Positions 32,371 through 41,169 of a stretch of DNA of 64,000 nucleotides are shown in pieces. The stretch lies in contig CDRNST010000382.1 of NCBI GenBank assembly GCA_977016875.1, positions 1,860,001 to 1,924,000 of the forward strand. Direction: 5' to 3'. The DNA comes from Pavona decussata (lineage: Eukaryota). The notes below the pieces were generated by a model, which saw only the letters and a list, made by a program, of their open reading frames with translations, searched no databases and was not told the DNA's origin. Position numbers and translations under genes: made by a program. Every line of letters begins with the position of its first letter. Within the stretch, counting starts at the first letter, position 1.

Positions 32371-34327
32371 AACCCATGGTAAGATCGAAATTTAGAAAAA
32401 GGAACAAATTGCAACAGTTCTTCATTTCTATTGTTAAAACAAGTGCCAATCAGTGCAATGAGAAGTGTTTTGTCCTTAAGCTGATTTGCATGTGAATGGA
32501 TGTCTATCTGTTGGTATCAGACACTTTGGTCATAATCATTGTTGAAGTTCCAATAATGGAACGAACACCGGTTTCTGTGAAGCTGCAAATTGTGTCGCTT
32601 TCATCAAAATCAAAAAGTATCAATGCAATTGTACGCCAACTCCAAAAGGAAGGCATCAAAATCAGACAGCAAACCGTAGCCAGGATATTAAAAATATAAA
32701 GAAAGTAGATACCTTGCTGATAAGGCATCCAACGGCCACAAACCCATCCTGTCAATGGAACAATTAAATTTCATTGACACAAAAATTGAAGAAAATGATG
32801 AACTTACTGCTATTGATGAGGGTTCAAGTTGTTTACTGAATTTACACCATTGCTTTTGTTACTAATGTCTAACTCTAACCAACCAAGTGTATGATTAGTT
32901 GATCTTATATTAATTTAGTAAATGTTTTTTTAAGGTCTTAAGAAGCTGCTATACAGCGAGATGGGAGTTCACTTGTCAACATCCACCAACAAAAGAACAA
33001 GACGGAAACTTGGTTGAAGAAATGTGGCCCGTTATTGTCAGATGGTTTGAGAAACAAATCAAACCGACTGCCTGGCTTTTGCTCAGAAATGCCTAGAAAA
33101 AAGGAGAAGATTTTGAAGACGTCATCTTCATAGTACCATCTGGCTCAAACGGCATGGGAAGATCTGTTTCAGAAAGGCGGGAAGACCAGGCAAGCGAGAG
33201 GAAACACCCCCTCACAGTCAACTCTTGGGCTGGCATTTCAAGGAGAGGTGCCACTCTGATTTGATCATTAGTGGTATAATGAAGAAGGAGTTTTATGTCG
33301 ACGAGATTCTAAACAAAGTATTCCTCCCATTTACTTCAGACACTTTTACAGATGATTATTGTTTTTAACAGGATAATGATCCCAAACATAAAAGTAAGTT
33401 ACCTTTTTTAAGCGCACCATTGTGAAAAAAATTGTAAGAGTTTGTTCTCTAATGAACGCTTTCTCCTTGTTTTACATATACTGGCTATGCAGTTTATCCA
33501 GGACAACAGGATCAACTACTGGCCCACCCCAGCAGAGAGCCCGATATGAATCCAATCGAAAACCTGTGGCTAAAGCACTACCTTAGAGTCTATATGAAGC
33601 CCATGAACATAGAGGAGCTTGTCGCCGGCATTCAGCATTTCTGGGATACCAAGGCTGCTGCCTAACGGGCGCCCGGTCGCCAGAGGCGCCCAAGGTAAGA
33701 GCATGGGCGACCAAATTTCGGTACAAGGAGCCCGCGCGGGCGCCTGACTTAACACACGGCATTACACTTAACCTCCTTGTACATTATATTCCTTTAGCTG
33801 GAGTAGGACTTTAAACAGTGGAACTGTTGATATGGTTAGCGATGATGCGATTAGGCAGTATAAAATTTCCACAAGTAAACCGTAAATTATGTAAACCTAA
33901 CGTGTTCAACTGTGAAGCTTTGTCGAAACGAACGAAGCCATCGTTTCCGAGTCCGGATGGCAGTTGAAGACTGGGTCTGAGATTTGACTTCCAAATATGG
34001 AATAGCAAAATTATGGGCTGTTTGTTGCCTATGTTGACATTCGTGCAGTTCATCGTTTGCTTGGGTTTTCGTCGATTTGATAACTTTTTTGTGGCGAGAA
34101 TGGGAAGCTATCTTGCGTGCTATCGACTGGACGTGCTTGATGTTCGATTTCATGTACCAGTTTGCAACGTATCAGCATTTTCAAGAGACTTTAAAAAACA
34201 ACACGCCAGAGAACGCAGTATGATATTTCATATTTGTAATGTGATGTCTTTACCTTGAATAAAGAAATTAAAGTAATGATCAACTTTGTGTTGGTTGTAT
34301 TTCTGCCTTGCTGCACGTGCTTAGCGC

Positions 34328-34415
34328 CCTTTCCCGCTAAAATCGGCAAAGGTTCTGCTTTTCCCGCTAAAATCGGCAAAGGTTCTTCTTTTCTCGCTAA
34401 AATCGACAAAGGTTT
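34328..34415. repeat. 30-bp tandem repeat x3 just upstream of the hAT ATG
   Basis: tttcccgctaaaatcggcaaaggttct repeated three times. Confidence 0.9.
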
Positions 34416-34445
34416 CAGCAATTTGTCTTAAGCCCAGTGACTACA

Positions 34446-37400
34446 ATGGAATTCTCGCAACAGGTAAGCAATGTTTATTTCTTACGACTTCGTATGTGAA
34501 CATTTATATTAATATAGATAACGATTTGGAAACTGTCTCTTTCAAAACAATAAAATATATTTCCCGCTTTTAAAACACAACCGAAGATGCTGTGCCTTCA
34601 TTTGACCTATATTCAATGCGGTTTTATTTAATCCGTAGTGACAACTTGACATTCTTGACCTTCTAAACGAAATAGCAGATCAGCTAGGTAGCTGTCTGTG
34701 ATTGCCTCGCAAATTCATGCAAATTTTCTTTGACTAATGAAATTTGAACCGCGTTTGTTTTGAGATCAAAGATACTGTAAGCTTGATATTTCACTTATAA
34801 TAAAAACGGCTTCTTTTCGCGTACAGTTTCTACAGCTTCGATACACTGATGTTGAGTTTGGTTCTGGAACATGCTCACAGAAAAGTGCAGAAAGTTTAAG
34901 ACAGTAGCGCTTGAAATGTAACAAATATCATTTTCGTGACACGGCTATTTTTGTCGTGGAAGGAAATTTGATCGGGGCAGATTTTGATCACGTGCTAGGT
35001 AACCAGTTCTGACGGCTCAGATGGAGAATCTCTCTTTTCCATAACCAAACCAGGAATTTACCTTCAAGATGACCATGCAACGATGAATGTCTTGTTTATT
35101 CATTCTCATCTTAGTTGAACATTAATTATAAGGAAATTTGGCAAAGTTAAATTTTGTTGCGGGAAAATACTCGGTTATAAGACGCACCCCGAGTTTTGAG
35201 AAAATTTTTATCGAGCAAGCACAAATTTTCGTAAACAAAGGTGCGTCTTATAAGTGAATAAATACGGTACTTCGGTTATCAATTGTTTTCTTCTGATACT
35301 GACTTGTAATTGGGCTATATTTTTATTCGCTTACAAATACAAAATCTTTCGGGGTTTGGCCGCGGGAATCTTTATTCCTTTAGTGACAGATATAAGATAT
35401 TTTAAAATGAAATGCCACTTGATATCTTTATAGTAACGCTACACTGTGTATAACTGGTCTAGCCTCATTGAGGCCAAGGTCCTCAATAAAATATAACAAG
35501 TTTTGAACAGTTCACAGAGTGGGCCGGTTTTCTTTATATTTCAGGTTGCTGACTTAAAAACTTTGAAAGAAGCCCTGATTAGCAATAACCAAGATTTGTG
35601 TTGCAAGTTAAGGGACAAATATTCGCGAAAATTAAACCTTAACCAGTCCTTCCCGAGATCTGATAAGCTAAAACAAGACCAACTGGCACAGTCCCTTATT
35701 CCGTGTGATGCACCAACTGGCCTTATTGCTCATGAAGTCGCTGGGGATGGAAATTGCCTGTACCACGCCATTTCTCTGGCCCTTGTGGGTACAACAGAAT
35801 ACTCTACTTGTCTTCGTATTCTGACAGCCATTGAGCTGTTTGAAAATACTGCCTACTATGGAAACCATCCGCGATTCCGGGAAGCTCTTCAATGTGGGTG
35901 TCCCTTTGGAGAAGTCACCGTTTTCACGCTCGCACTGAAAGAAAATGGAATAGCAGAGTGGGAGCACAGTGGCAACCGTGAGTCTGCTATCCAGAGTGAG
36001 GCAATTGGGGGATGTCAGCTAGGTGAATGGTCGTCGCTGATGCACATCATGGCACTTTCCACAGTGATTTCCAGGCCTGTCTTTACAATCTATCCAAGTT
36101 GTGCAGAAGCTATTCGCCCCCTCTTACATGGCTTAGTGAAACCACGTATTAACAGGCCAGACGTGTTTTCCAATAATGATTGCTTTCATATTCTGTGGTC
36201 AAGGGATGGTGGATTAGACAGCCGCCCAAATGCTATTTATGTTCCTAACCACTTTGTCCCCCTTTTTAAAAAGGAATATGCCGATCATGCAGTCAAAACT
36301 GCTAAAGACTACCGCAAAGTTGCTGACCAGTCCACTAAAAAAGCATCCCCCCCGAAAAGGTCGTTTAGTTTGGAAGACTTTTGGTTTCCAACAGAATGTA
36401 AAAAGAAAAAGAGAAATGAAGCAGGCATAAACAATAAAAGAATGAAAATGGGGGATGATGGGAAGACAGAAAAGAAGACAGAGGACAAAATAAAGATGAA
36501 GGAAAAAATGCTGGTGGAGGAAGAATTAAAGATTCAGGATGACATGAAGATGGAAAAGGAATTGAAGATGCAGGATGAAACGAAGATGACAGATGAATTT
36601 AAGATGCAGGACGAAACAGATATGGAAGATGAGAGAAAAATGGAGGATGAGAGGAAAATGAAGGATGATCAGGGGAAGATGGATGCAAGAAAAATGGCTG
36701 CAGAAAAGAACATGGAGGGTGAAAGAAAGGTAAAGAGTGCAACGACGATGGATGATAAAAGGAAGATTGAGGTGAATAGGAAGATAGAAGAAGATGGAAA
36801 GGATGAATCGGATAGGACAAGGGAAAATCACGCTAATGCTATGGACAAACGTAAGGAATATGAACAAAAACGGACAAGGTCATTTCAGTGGAAGTGGCTT
36901 CAAGCCCATTCTTGGTTGCGTATAAACCTTGTAAGAAAAGGCACAATGCAGCCATTCATTACTAACACACCCTACCCAAATTCACAACCTGTTGGAACAG
37001 CAGTGAAATCAATGTACTGTGGTGTTTGCTCAAAGCACCCTTCTTTAGCATCAAAGGACAGTGAAATAGCTAAGAGAAGTGGGTCAAGCAACTTCAAAAA
37101 CGAAACATTAAAAAAACATGAAACAAGCCAGAACCATAAAAAATGTATTGCTGCGGACAAAGCCATAAATGATCCGAAAAAAACTGAAATGTACAAGTGC
37201 TGTAAGCAGTTATACGAAAAAGAAGACGAAAAAATGGAGAAGAAATTTAAAACAGCCTTCTACATTTCAGCATTAGAACGGCCATTAGATGACTATGAAA
37301 GTCTCTGTGCGCTTCAAAAGTTAAATGGGGTGGAGCTGGGTGAAACTTACTTAACACGATCTGCATGTACTGAGTTCATTGAGCACATAAGCTCTGTTAT

Positions 37401-39027
37401 GAAGGAGGATCTCGCAGACAAATTGAAGGAATGTAACTTTTTCTCCCTAATGATTGATGGAAGTACAGATCATGGTGTCATTGAGGAAGCCATTATGTAT
37501 GTGCGCTACTTGGAAAAGTCAGTTGGAAGACCGGTCACTGCATATCTTGGAATCGAAGAACCTAAGGCTGGAACTGGAAGAGGTTATTTAGATGCGGTTG
37601 ATTCCTGTTTCCAAAGAGTAACCAACATGAATTCAGTCACCTGGAAGGAGAAAATTACAGGCCTGGGAACTGATGGCTGTGCGGCAATGACAGGTGAGAA
37701 GAACGGAGTGGTTGGTTTATTGAGGCAAGAAAATAGAGAATTTATGGGATTCTGGTGCGGAGCACACAAGCTTGAATTGGCAGTTGTCAAGTGCCTAGAA
37801 AAATACCCAGATTTTGTGAAAGTACGTGATGTCCTTCGCAGTTTATACCAGGAATATCACTACAGCGCCAAGGCCCTCAGGGAATTAAGAGAGTTAGCTG
37901 AAGCACTAGATAACCAGATCTCTAAGCCTACTAATGTGTTTGGAGCTAGATGGTTGCCACATCTTCAAACCGCACTCCAGGTACTGTTTCGGGGATATAA
38001 AACTCTCATGATGCATTGCCAGAACACAAGAGAGATGCGTGTAGGATCAAGTGGTAGACAGGGGCGAGCATCATTTTCGGTCAAGTTCTTAACCTCATTC
38101 AGAGGGTTGCTCTTTACCAGTTTTCTGTGGGACATTGCGGAGGAAGCAGCTCATTTAAGTAAGGTTTTTCAAGCTGAGTTTCTTACAGTTACAACCGCAG
38201 CGGCAGCAGTTCGAAAATTTGAATTACAGTGTCTTAATATGAAGTCGTTAAATGGTCCAAGACTTGAGGCGTTTTTGAAAGAAGCAGGGGATGGCAGTGT
38301 GTTCAGAGAAATTAAGATCAAAAGGGAAGACAATGATATTGAACAATTTGAGAAGATCAGAAAGTCTGTTTTGGATGAAATTGGACAGAGCATGGGGGAG
38401 CGATTCCATTACCTCTTTAACGACCCAGTTGTAAAGGCTTCTTCAGTTTTAGATCCAGACACGTGGCCTACAGATCCTGAAGAGTTAGCGTCTTATGGTT
38501 GTGATCAGCTCTGTGTAATCGCTAACAGGTACCAAGAGCAGTTGCAAAAAGCTGGTTTTAAAGCTGAGTCTGTCAGTAGTGAGTGGCAGGGAGTTAAGAG
38601 CCTTGTGCGTCTAATGAAGCACAAGACAACACCTGACATTTACTCTGTGTTGTTTTCTAAACAAGAAGAATTTCCTAACTTCCTTTTGATTGCCGAGATT
38701 GTGTTCACCTGGCCTTTGTCCACCGCAGCTTGTGAGCGAGGTTTCAGCTCCATGAACCGCACTAAAACTATTCAGCGTTCAAGTCTTGCAACTAGGACAC
38801 TGGACAACAACTTGCGTATCTCAGTTAAGTACCACAGCCTGAACAAATCAGAGAGAGTCAAGGCCTTCGCTCAATCTGGGCACCTTGCCAATGCAGTCAA
38901 GCATTGGCGAGAAAACAGTGTCAGAGCCCGACGAGAGAACTGGGTGGACAAACATCCAGAGGCTAGAACCTGGAGTTCTCTTAAGGGGAAAAACCAAAAG
39001 ACTGATGAACATTGCTCAATGCTGTGA
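34446..39027 (+). CDS. hAT transposase (ZNF862-like) with N-terminal vertnin-like OTU protease domain; predicted exons 34446-34463 and 35545-39027, ~1166 aa
   Basis: ATG GAA TTC TCG CAA CAG|gtaagc and tttcag|GTT are both phase 0; OTU GDGNCLY..W..NHFVP; TTF-type Zn finger; IDGSTD, TDG, CGAH, RWL, STAACERGFS motifs all intact. Confidence 0.88.
35165..35269. mobile_element. Pogo/Tigger-like MITE remnant in the hAT intron
   Basis: tataagacgcacc...ggtgcgtcttata inverted pair ending aaatacggta. Confidence 0.5.
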
Positions 39028-41169
39028 TTTAATTGTAAACTACACTGTGAATTCAAAGGATCTGTTTTGGACCCAAAATTGGGAGTTTTTCCTTGAGTAA
39101 AATACAGTACTATTTGAGGGGCTAATTAAGCTCTTCTAAAATGGAGCTGTTTTGGACAACTCCGAGCTGTTTTGGAGAACTTATAAGACTTAAAAAAATG
39201 ATCTTTTGAATTTACAATGTAGTTACATTGACATAAAATTCTTTTATAGCACAGAATCAGATAGGAAAATGTTATTCAATTTAAATGATTCCTCAAATGT
39301 TTAGCACTTCATTTAATGAGATCCATCCAGGCTAAGGTTTACATAAGGCACTTGATGTTCTGTTCTGTTTTTCCTGTTCATGTATAAAAAAGGCAAGGAG
39401 AGGATTGGTCTACTTTAGAAAGTTTTTGGAAGACTAGTTAAGTTGTCATGTGGAACACAACTGTTACTGAACAAATGTGAAAGTCAAGTAAATAATTCTG
39501 AGTTGAAATTACCTACTGTTATGTTATTCTTTTATTGTGAAAATTGTGAAAATTCCTTTTACACGCAAATTAAGCCCCTCAAATATTTTTCCGGCTCATG
39601 AATGTGTATAAGAAAGGTAAGAAGCAGTTTAATTGTTACATTTTAGAAAATTCTTTGAAGGCTCTTCTAGGTCACATTGAACACAACAGATGTGGAAGTT
39701 AATTGAATAAATTAATAAATGAAAGTAAATAATTCGGTTAATTCTTGTTTACGTGTTATTTATTAGGCCCGGCGAATTCTTATTAAAGTGTGCAAGAACC
39801 TCTATAACCTATGTAATGATCTTGGAAAAACAATACATGGATTTCAAACTGGGCTCCTAACAATGTGGCTCGGGCTCCTAACTTTAAACTTTAGGAGCCC
39901 GAAGGGCTCCCTAAAATTTTTCTTAGGCAGCAGCCTTGGATACTGTATCACCTGAAAAGTTACAGTGCTACATAAGCCATCTACGAAAGGTGCTCCAGTT
40001 GTGGCTGAATGAGAGGGGAGAGTGTCAGGCTACTGATAAACTCAACATGGTTCTTCAACTGAAACTGAAGAGCCCTCACTCTGCATAATACAGGTGTCAA
40101 AAATGGCTACTTTAGGAACCACCAGATGTAATAAAAGCCATAATCAACAAAACTGACCTTCATAAATTACACGGGAGCAAAACGTGAAATGCCACACGCC
40201 ACATTAAACATTCTAAAAATTCCTGTAGTCCCGTAGTTAGTTAAGACAAGTTTAAAAATATATCTCCAGTTCTATTTGGGCTACAAAGATGCTTAAAACG
40301 GGAAAATACTCCTTTGATAGCAAAAGTTATGATCCAAATTATTACAGTGCGCCAAGTAAGGCAATGATGCTTATTTGCGAGTGAAAATGGCGTGAGTCGA
40401 AACAAGAGCTGGGAAGCGTTATAACACATTCTTTTGTTTTTGTTAAGCATCCTGGCTGGGCGTTGAGACAAAAATTGAAAATAATATTTATGTATATATT
40501 TAGCCATATCTAAAAGCGGAGCTCCACAATTCTTTTTTGCGGGCCCAAGAGAGGCCCGCAACCCTAATCTTGACAGTGACCAGCAGGTTGCGTATTACGC
40601 TTGCGCGCCACGTTTATAACAGAGACGCTAAAACCAGGAATTAAAATTTTGTTCTACAACTAAGAACGACCAGAATGCGAAAAATGTGTCCATTAGGACC
40701 ATTTGTCACATGGAATCCCAACCTCCAGGTTGATGGGTTCCAATCTTCTGTCACATGGATCGAAGGACGTTTTGCTGATGTTGTTGAGACGAGCTTCAAG
40801 GACTTTGAACGTGTTGACGTCGTTGAGGCGAGCTTCAAGGACTTTGAGCATAATTGGATTTGCTGCAGGTTATTTTTTAAGGTTAGTTATATTATATTGA
40901 ATGCTGATTATTGTTATGGGCAGTTAAATCTTTTGGTAAACCACTTTCACATGTGATATGTTTTGAGTAACGATCACCAAGCTGAAGTATAGAACACTCT
41001 CTGTATGGAAAACATGGCAAAGTTTTCCAAGTCTTCTGCTGAAGATGTCCCATTTATCTCAATGATGATGTCGCTGCATACAATCCCCAAGAACTCCTGA
41101 AGCTTTCTCAACCAGTAGCTTGCATTCAAGCTCGCCATTCATCCTTCACTGCTAAATCGTTACCTTCTG

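Follow-up and report, generated by a model that had tools for sequence, protein, structure and literature searches.

The window analysed here, i.e. a 64,000-nt stretch of Pavona decussata contig CDRNST010000382.1 (assembly GCA_977016875.1), probably carries an autonomous and recently active hAT5 transposon whose single protein joins an OTU (ovarian tumour) isopeptidase to a hAT transposase. The element occupies positions 33650-39938 (6,289 bp), as determined by reading its ends and comparing 12 insertions; coordinates given without a locus name are positions in the window on its forward strand. Taken separately, hAT5 elements, OTU proteases and DNA transposons of other kinds with protease cargo are known. 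What appears to be new is an OTU domain fused to a hAT5 transposase, an old and widespread architecture in marine invertebrates that we encountered in no paper. The literature survey returned no publication on a hAT transposase bearing an OTU domain, the Repbase and Dfam catalogues lying outside the comparison. An initial annotation, made from the sequence alone, had called such cargo not standard for hAT transposases; this agrees with the literature, but within the hAT clade concerned the fusion turned out to be common and not a one-off.

The element is delimited by perfect 16-nt terminal inverted repeats (TIRs, 100 % complementary), CAAGGCTGCTGCCTAA on the left (33650-33665, + strand) and its complement on the right (39923-39938, - strand). 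Both were recovered by an inverted-repeat search and confirmed by end reading, and the same TIRs are present in two diverged elements from other assemblies, L061 and L062. A 17-nt TIR proposed by the repeat finder was discarded, the 17th pair being a chance match between bases of the target-site duplication (TSD). The latter is the 5-bp sequence GATAC, found identically at 33645-33649 and 39939-39943 by end reading and insertion comparison. A 5-bp TSD was observed in 12 of the 12 complete insertions of the own genome (602-Mb assembly), with sequences that all differ and reveal no obvious consensus, which rules out the 8-bp TSD canonical for hAT elements. Of the L061/L062 pair, one member shows a clean 5-bp TSD; no matching TSD was found at the ends of L062, perhaps because the insertion is old or rearranged. 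The hAT5 subgroup is defined by a hAT-type transposase together with 5-bp TSDs (PMC9004415, PMC12730594) and is credited, in the citing text of these two papers, to Kapitonov & Jurka 2007 (Repbase Reports) and Putnam et al. 2007. Because a hAT-type transposase is combined here with 5-bp TSDs, the element belongs by that definition to the hAT5 subgroup of the hAT superfamily, for which the 5-bp duplication is the defining exception to the 8-bp rule. The TIR- and TSD-bounded hAT element announced by the initial annotation is thus retained, amended to a 5-bp TSD and to the hAT5 type.

The element sits in a decayed Tc1/mariner-type transposase gene, readable in its flanks (about 33200-33649 and 39944-40010) as ...QDNDPKHKSK..., ...PDMNPIENLW... 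and, across the insertion point, ...IEELVAGIQHFWD followed by TVSPEKLQCYISHLRKVL, with several stops upstream. Near both ends, a GC-rich subterminal motif, GGAGCCCG, was noted (33727-33734 and 39894-39910), as well as a small palindrome, GGAGCCCGAAGGGCTCC, at the right end; both are possible transposase-binding sites.

At least nine copies of the element are present in the own genome, with 99.5-100 % nucleotide identity over the OTU region. The full-length frame is kept in six of these nine copies (1169 aa in five of them, 1176 aa in the window copy) and is interrupted in the remaining three; copy L007 lacks 18 nt in the charged linker. Four internal-deletion derivatives of 1.2-2.2 kb were also found, which have retained both ends and each possess their own 5-bp TSD. 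Their junctions display 0-2 bp of microhomology or 2-9 bp of filler, the pattern expected of abortive gap repair following excision. A sister copy (L002, G000:C382:1936187-1942475, minus strand) is located on the same contig, 12 kb past the end of the window and 42 kb from the window copy, in opposite orientation, with an interrupted frame (705 aa). L002 and the window copy share two private substitutions and a private 1-nt deletion (one C, 38989-38990, + strand), the extra C being present in the seven other copies. This shared deletion, together with the inverted and nearby position of L002, suggests a local hop. Given the near-identical copies, the derivatives with their own TSDs and the local sister, the family is judged to be very young and probably still active. 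The deletion at about 38989 alters the last six or so residues of the window copy's protein, so the transposon initially described as intact is complete in its frame and domains and slightly altered at its C-terminus.

The uninterrupted frame running from the OTU domain to the hAT core, as first described, does exist in the list of open reading frames (35503-39027, + strand). It contains no ATG upstream of the codon for the OTU cysteine, and the gene that we infer has two exons. Comparison of the window element with L061 and L062 pointed to a small conserved island, ATGG..TCTCGCAACAG followed by GTAAGC, in otherwise poorly alignable surroundings about 1.1 kb upstream of the long frame. The coding part of this first exon would consist of an ATG and five codons (MEFSQQ; ATG GAA TTC TCG CAA CAG; 34446-34463, + strand), followed by the donor GTAAGC at 34464. 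The putative intron (34464-35544, + strand) ends with a polypyrimidine tract and a CAG acceptor at 35542-35544, both junctions being in phase 0. In all three elements, coding conservation begins immediately after the acceptor AG (35543-35544). Exon 2 (35545-39027, + strand), delineated from the open reading frame list, Pfam and motif positions, comprises 1,160 codons and a stop, and encodes, in order, the OTU domain, a motif resembling a PCNA-interacting peptide (PIP) box, a putative nuclear localization signal (NLS), a linker, a zinc finger and the hAT transposase. We favour this two-exon model, MEFSQQ joined to VADLK... in a predicted protein of about 1,166 residues, because elements that have otherwise diverged still share the mini-exon, donor and acceptor. 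All domains therefore lie in one coding frame, as had been claimed, the amendment being that the gene would have two exons. The methionine start of a database protein (P0001) was not adopted as a gene model, being a prokaryote-style TTG call. Regarding the intron itself, about 360 bp of the window copy (alignment columns ~1720-2083) have no counterpart in L061 and L062, and a repeat unrelated to the element was seen at 35092-35269, with a 21-nt inverted pair (35168-35188/35240-35260) and 73-76 % matches on other contigs.

The OTU domain (35545-36300, + strand) is of the A20/vertnin type. Its motifs were found exactly where first reported, i.e. GDGNCLY at 35743-35763 with the cysteine at 35755-35757, WSSLMHIMALS at 36028-36060, and PNHFVP at 36244-36261 with the histidine at 36250-36252. 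In an alignment of 40 homologues reaching down to 23 % identity, the cysteine is invariant and the histidine (xNHFVP) at least 90 % conserved, in agreement with the catalytic motifs having been called intact; conserved aspartates are found upstream of the cysteine, as in A20. Against sequences of the Protein Data Bank (PDB), phmmer matched A20 and aligned GDGNCL.HA on its catalytic-cysteine motif (Cys103), and among the language-model neighbours in the ESM Atlas, 27 of 30 feature matches were OTU clusters. The AlphaFold2 (AF2) model built with the 40 homologues reached a predicted local distance difference test score (pLDDT) of 88.5 and a predicted template modelling score of 0.82. Foldseek matched this model to A20, Cezanne, VCPIP1 and TRABID, and its structural neighbours also include OTUD3 and viral OTUs; as modelled, the domain has the papain-like OTU fold. 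The ratio of nonsynonymous to synonymous substitutions (dN/dS) among the three elements was 0.18-0.22 for the OTU domain, 0.11 for the transposase core and 0.14-0.36 for the linker, approximate values given a dS of about 1. By this sequence comparison, the OTU part is under purifying selection. The two checks initially proposed for this domain, i.e. prediction of an OTU fold and absence of neutral evolution, thus both came out in its favour.

The C-terminal part of the protein is a complete hAT transposase, as had been read from its DDE core and dimerisation motif. The zinc finger (37006-37164, + strand), initially taken for a TTF-type finger, is typed by Pfam as zf-C17orf113 (PF25431; 31.7 bits for a cut-off of 29.5). 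The RNase-H-like DDE core with its insertion domain (37456-38736, + strand) was delimited by alignment, AF2 and Foldseek, and the dimerisation domain Dimer_Tnp_hAT (PF05699) scores 30.4 bits for a cut-off of 21.4 (38635-38805, + strand). Catalytic positions are D at 37456-37458, D at 37672-37674 and E at 38734-38736, with CxxH within 37756-37779 and RW within 37942-37962. In an alignment of 18 sequences, the first D (MIDGSTD), CxxH, RW and E (CERGFS) are invariant; the second D, which sits in GTDG, is deleted in one defective relative. This relative is the protein P0002 of L061 (L061:6001-9408), in which the LGTDG segment is missing; judging from its sequence, the L061 copy has probably lost the ability to transpose although its frame is open. 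The AF2 model of the transposase has a pLDDT of 85.7, and the top 12 Foldseek matches are all Hermes (E-values from 6e-9 to 2e-6), the next match having an E-value of 0.03. A phmmer search with the transposase part returned no match among PDB sequences. Precomputed annotations of near-identical proteins add DUF4371 and FAM200-ZBED5_RNase-like, and the nearest named sequence kin of the zinc finger and core are ZNF862-like proteins (27-29 % identity over at least 90 % of the region).

Between these two enzymatic parts lies a PIP-box-like motif, KRSFSLEDFWFP (36355-36390, + strand), recognized from homologues in which the corresponding position is taken by a canonical Qxx[IL]xx[FY][FY] (e.g. QKSISSFF, QQKLPAFF, QQGISAFF and QTPIINFY). 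In many homologues, such PIP-type motifs occur about 20-40 residues past the histidine motif, flanked by basic residues, and they were counted in 20 of 49 non-redundant tails versus 2.1 ± 1.4 in composition-matched shuffles. In the window protein, KRSFSLEDFWFP is followed by KKKKR, and a short helix is modelled by AF2 on LEDF (residues 277-280). We infer that KRSFSLEDFWFP is a candidate PCNA-binding peptide. The basic NLS-like patch (KKKKR...KRMK; 36400-36447, + strand), whose function is deduced from its sequence, and the low-complexity charged linker of K/E/D/M repeats (36448-36880, + strand; 51 % K/R/E/D), encoded by 18/36-bp tandem repeats, correspond to what the initial annotation had described.

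The fusion extends well beyond the copies of this family. An exhaustive HMMER search with the OTU domain retrieved 1,512 representative proteins with E ≤ 1e-3, of which 389 had E ≤ 1e-10. About 70 further OTU-domain matches (25-48 % identity) were found in the own genome, several of whose frames run on into zf-C17orf113 and a DUF4371/hAT core; two of these have cores only 29 % identical to that of the window element and OTU domains 39-45 % identical. Complete proteins with OTU, zinc finger and hAT core, and 53-55 % core identity, are present in other assemblies (P0161, P0178), and the fusion was also recognized in P0108 and P0136. Clusters combining OTU with zf-C17orf113 or with DUF4371 are numerous in corals, bivalves and marine metagenomes. 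The fusion proposed for verification in other copies and species was therefore recovered in all nine copies, in the two other-assembly elements and in diverged families. Because OTU and hAT recur together in families with cores only 29 % identical, the fusion is, on these sequences, taken to be ancient and maintained, and not a recent capture.

This OTU subtype is also associated with other partners, i.e. DUF7869 in mussels, LRAT with a triple OTU in Dreissena, and a SAP domain, and it also forms the C-terminal end of large proteins otherwise devoid of Pfam matches. At two loci of the own genome, L057 (G000:C256:37031-40642) and L060 (G000:C96:1044425-1048036), a related OTU domain (29 % identity) heads an open frame of 1,659 aa, in which no hAT or other Pfam match was detected within the 3-4 kb loci examined. 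These are possibly a different type of mobile element with the same OTU subtype.

How the two activities would cooperate can be sketched as follows. The OTU domain, a putative deubiquitinase (DUB) or ubiquitin-like (Ubl) isopeptidase, would travel into the nucleus with the transposase and clear ubiquitin (Ub)-type marks off the enzyme it is fused to, or off factors present where excision or repair takes place. Its targets may be PCNA-associated, given the PIP-like motif, and the outcome would be a stabilised enzyme or a repair biased to the benefit of the element. We lean, with slightly better than even confidence, towards a domain that is catalytically active as a Ub/Ubl isopeptidase and serves the element. 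A more elaborate scenario is possible, though we hold it doubtful: a deep hAT5 lineage would carry an active A20/vertnin-type deubiquitinase and a PCNA-docking PIP-type motif, strip marks from PCNA or transposase at replication or gap-repair sites, and thereby couple transposition to replication and repair and evade host control, the dead OTU of vertnin being a domesticated descendant of it.

Several observations weigh against the interpretation of the element as an autonomous transposon with an isopeptidase-transposase protein. The window protein scores 23.1 bits with Pfam OTU (PF02338), i.e. 0.2 short of the 23.3 cut-off. The OTU assignment was nevertheless kept because the fold evidence was held decisive and because relatives (L042, L057 and P0161) pass the cut-off with 26.6-26.7 bits. 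The third catalytic residue (acidic or Asn) could not be assigned, no acidic residue being found at His+2 in the 40-homologue alignment. The PIP-like motif of the window element is without the canonical Gln; the splice from mini-exon to OTU exon comes from comparison of elements; and the high dS among these makes the selection estimates approximate. The loss of the second catalytic D in P0002 indicates that not every copy is functional, and the window copy has a C-terminal frameshift. Finally, translation from an internal start may yield a transposase devoid of OTU, or the OTU part may act as a product of its own.

This last point leads to an alternative that we regard as unlikely, in which OTU and transposase are separate products: an internal start or alternative splicing would yield an OTU-less transposase, and the OTU form would act in trans, for instance in counter-silencing. 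The long exon lacks an ATG of its own before the OTU cysteine, OTU-less ZNF862-like relatives of about 730-790 aa exist, and many database matches are OTU-only fragments, all of which would fit. Such short matches are, however, mostly fragmentary gene calls on short contigs. Elements separated by a dS of about 1, and even families whose cores share 29 % identity, have kept a single frame, and conservation of the mini-exon and splice sites extends to their phase.

Self-processing, i.e. an OTU protease that cuts the fusion in cis into an N-terminal product and a mature transposase, appears quite unlikely. It has an analogy in the OTU-like and papain-like proteases of some RNA-virus polyproteins, and viral OTUs are among the structural neighbours of the model; the N-terminal position of the protease on a long multidomain protein would also suit it, as would the disordered, fast-evolving linker of about 200 residues before the transposase. 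Reading of the linker nevertheless revealed no Ub-like ...GG cleavage motif, and the closest structural kin (A20, Cezanne, VCPIP1 and OTUD3) are cellular DUBs. Self-processing and a DUB role are not mutually exclusive.

We consider it very improbable that the domain is mainly a non-catalytic Ub/Ubl-binding or docking module targeting the transposase to modified chromatin or partners. The second-best shape match in the Atlas, vertnin, is reported to be without catalytic residues, and the unassigned third residue could be read the same way; a pure binder would, however, need neither the invariant cysteine nor the at least 90 % conserved histidine found in 40 homologues (GDGNC- and NHFVP-type motifs). 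That one hAT copy recently picked up a functionless fragment of a host OTU gene, a scenario for which the capture of host sequence by hAT and other DNA transposons is a known precedent, is refuted by the presence of the fusion in all nine copies, in same-TIR elements of two other assemblies and in several deeply diverged families, and by a constrained OTU part (dN/dS about 0.2).

The OTU-transposase protein was also compared with vertnin, whose label the initial annotation had applied to the OTU region. In the Atlas shape search, the chordate Vertnin cluster ranked second, with a template modelling (TM) score of 0.73 over 250 of 286 residues, while the other named OTU clusters reached 0.41-0.56 (OTUD7B-like, TRABID-like and VCPIP1, 0.55-0.56). 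Members of homologous clusters from an oyster and two corals are auto-named vertnin-like or Vertnin by NCBI or UniRef pipelines, so that the label is well founded as a likeness. The statement that vertnin lacks the catalytic cysteine likewise agrees with a 2023 classification of papain-like proteases, in which human vertnin is listed as an inactive OTU homologue (PMC10318531). We did not file the window protein in the vertnin family, because a zinc finger and hAT core make up the remainder of it; the vertnin middle domain (PF28388, perhaps outside the Pfam set used), HTH_23 and HTH_Tnp_1 were not detected in it. A protein search with the oyster 'vertnin-like' sequence retrieved invertebrate OTU(-hAT) proteins and no vertebrate vertnin, the region search with the window protein gave three matches with no vertebrate vertnin among them, and the non-OTU part of P0128 had no Atlas match. 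The literature survey yielded nothing on vertnin having a transposon origin, nor on C17orf113 biology.

Two further features of the element lie outside its coding exons. A 30-bp tandem repeat (TTTCCCGCTAAAATCGGCAAAGGTTCTGCT, 2.8 copies; 34330-34414, + strand), whose units are partly conserved in related elements, precedes the start codon by 32-116 bp and possibly serves as a promoter or in regulation. In the 3' non-coding part, a nested unit resembling a miniature inverted-repeat transposable element (MITE), with 31-nt inverted arms, lies at 39038-39224; its core (39040-39155, element positions 5391-5506) is matched at least 25 times in the genome, at about 80 % identity, with many of the matches clustered on contig C95.

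For the as yet unproven purpose of Ub-type proteases on transposition enzymes, the element offers a tractable test system, being a compact, apparently still mobile DDE transposon with near-identical copies in which one polypeptide unites a protease under selection with a transposase whose type is well understood; the PIP-like motif adds a concrete hypothesis tying the element to PCNA. For vertnin, a vertebrate developmental regulator, the results imply that some of the closest structural relatives of its OTU-like domain live in mobile elements, and for annotation, that many invertebrate 'vertnin-like' genes are fragments of OTU-hAT transposases.

Among known systems, the hAT5 group shares with the element the 5-bp TSDs, short TIRs, a hAT DDE core that ends in the dimerisation domain, and a distribution that covers cnidarians and other invertebrates; it differs by the OTU protease, of which no paper found makes mention for hAT5 or any hAT transposase. 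Hermes (PDB 2BW3, 4D1Q and 8SJD) is the only solved fold matching the transposase model (E-value 6e-9, TM score by target 0.57-0.63), with the same DDE RNase-H-like core and all-alpha insertion domain, whereas its sequence identity is 11-13 % and it has 8-bp TSDs, a BED-type N-terminus and no protease. ZNF862, a domesticated hAT transposase of vertebrates, and its invertebrate ZNF862-like kin have zf-C17orf113, FAM200-ZBED5_RNase-like and Dimer_Tnp_hAT in common with the window protein; they are host genes and not TIR-bounded mobile copies, the ZNF862-like proteins (about 730-790 aa) being too short for an OTU domain and vertebrate ZNF862 bearing a KRAB domain. On the OTU side, A20 (TNFAIP3), Cezanne (OTUD7B), TRABID and VCPIP1 are about 17-21 % identical to the domain, and are cellular enzymes with other accessory domains and without a transposase. 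Vertnin (VRTN) resembles the protein by its N-terminal OTU-type shape (TM score 0.73), but its catalytic residues are reported absent where the window protein keeps cysteine and histidine, and its remainder (Vertnin_mid, HTH_23 and HTH_Tnp_1) is unrelated to hAT.

As for transposases with a PIP-type motif, Warbrick and colleagues are said to have described in 1998 a PIP box in the Pogo transposase. Pogo is of the Tc1/mariner type and its motif is C-terminal, whereas that of the window element is, from its sequence, PIP-like. Protease cargo itself has precedents: Mutator-like elements (MULEs) carry a Ulp1 protease. In Helentrons, an Ub/Ubl-type cysteine protease (OTU or VTD) is encoded either in fusion with the transposition enzyme or next to it (PMC9741609, PMC4067079), which bears out the precedent invoked at the outset. 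A protective role towards transposition proteins has been put forward for their DUB domains; the same source states that no OTU domain of a transposon has ever been assayed (PMC9741609). Helentrons and MULEs rely on HUH/helicase or Mutator machinery, whereas the element described here couples its protease to a hAT DDE transposase.

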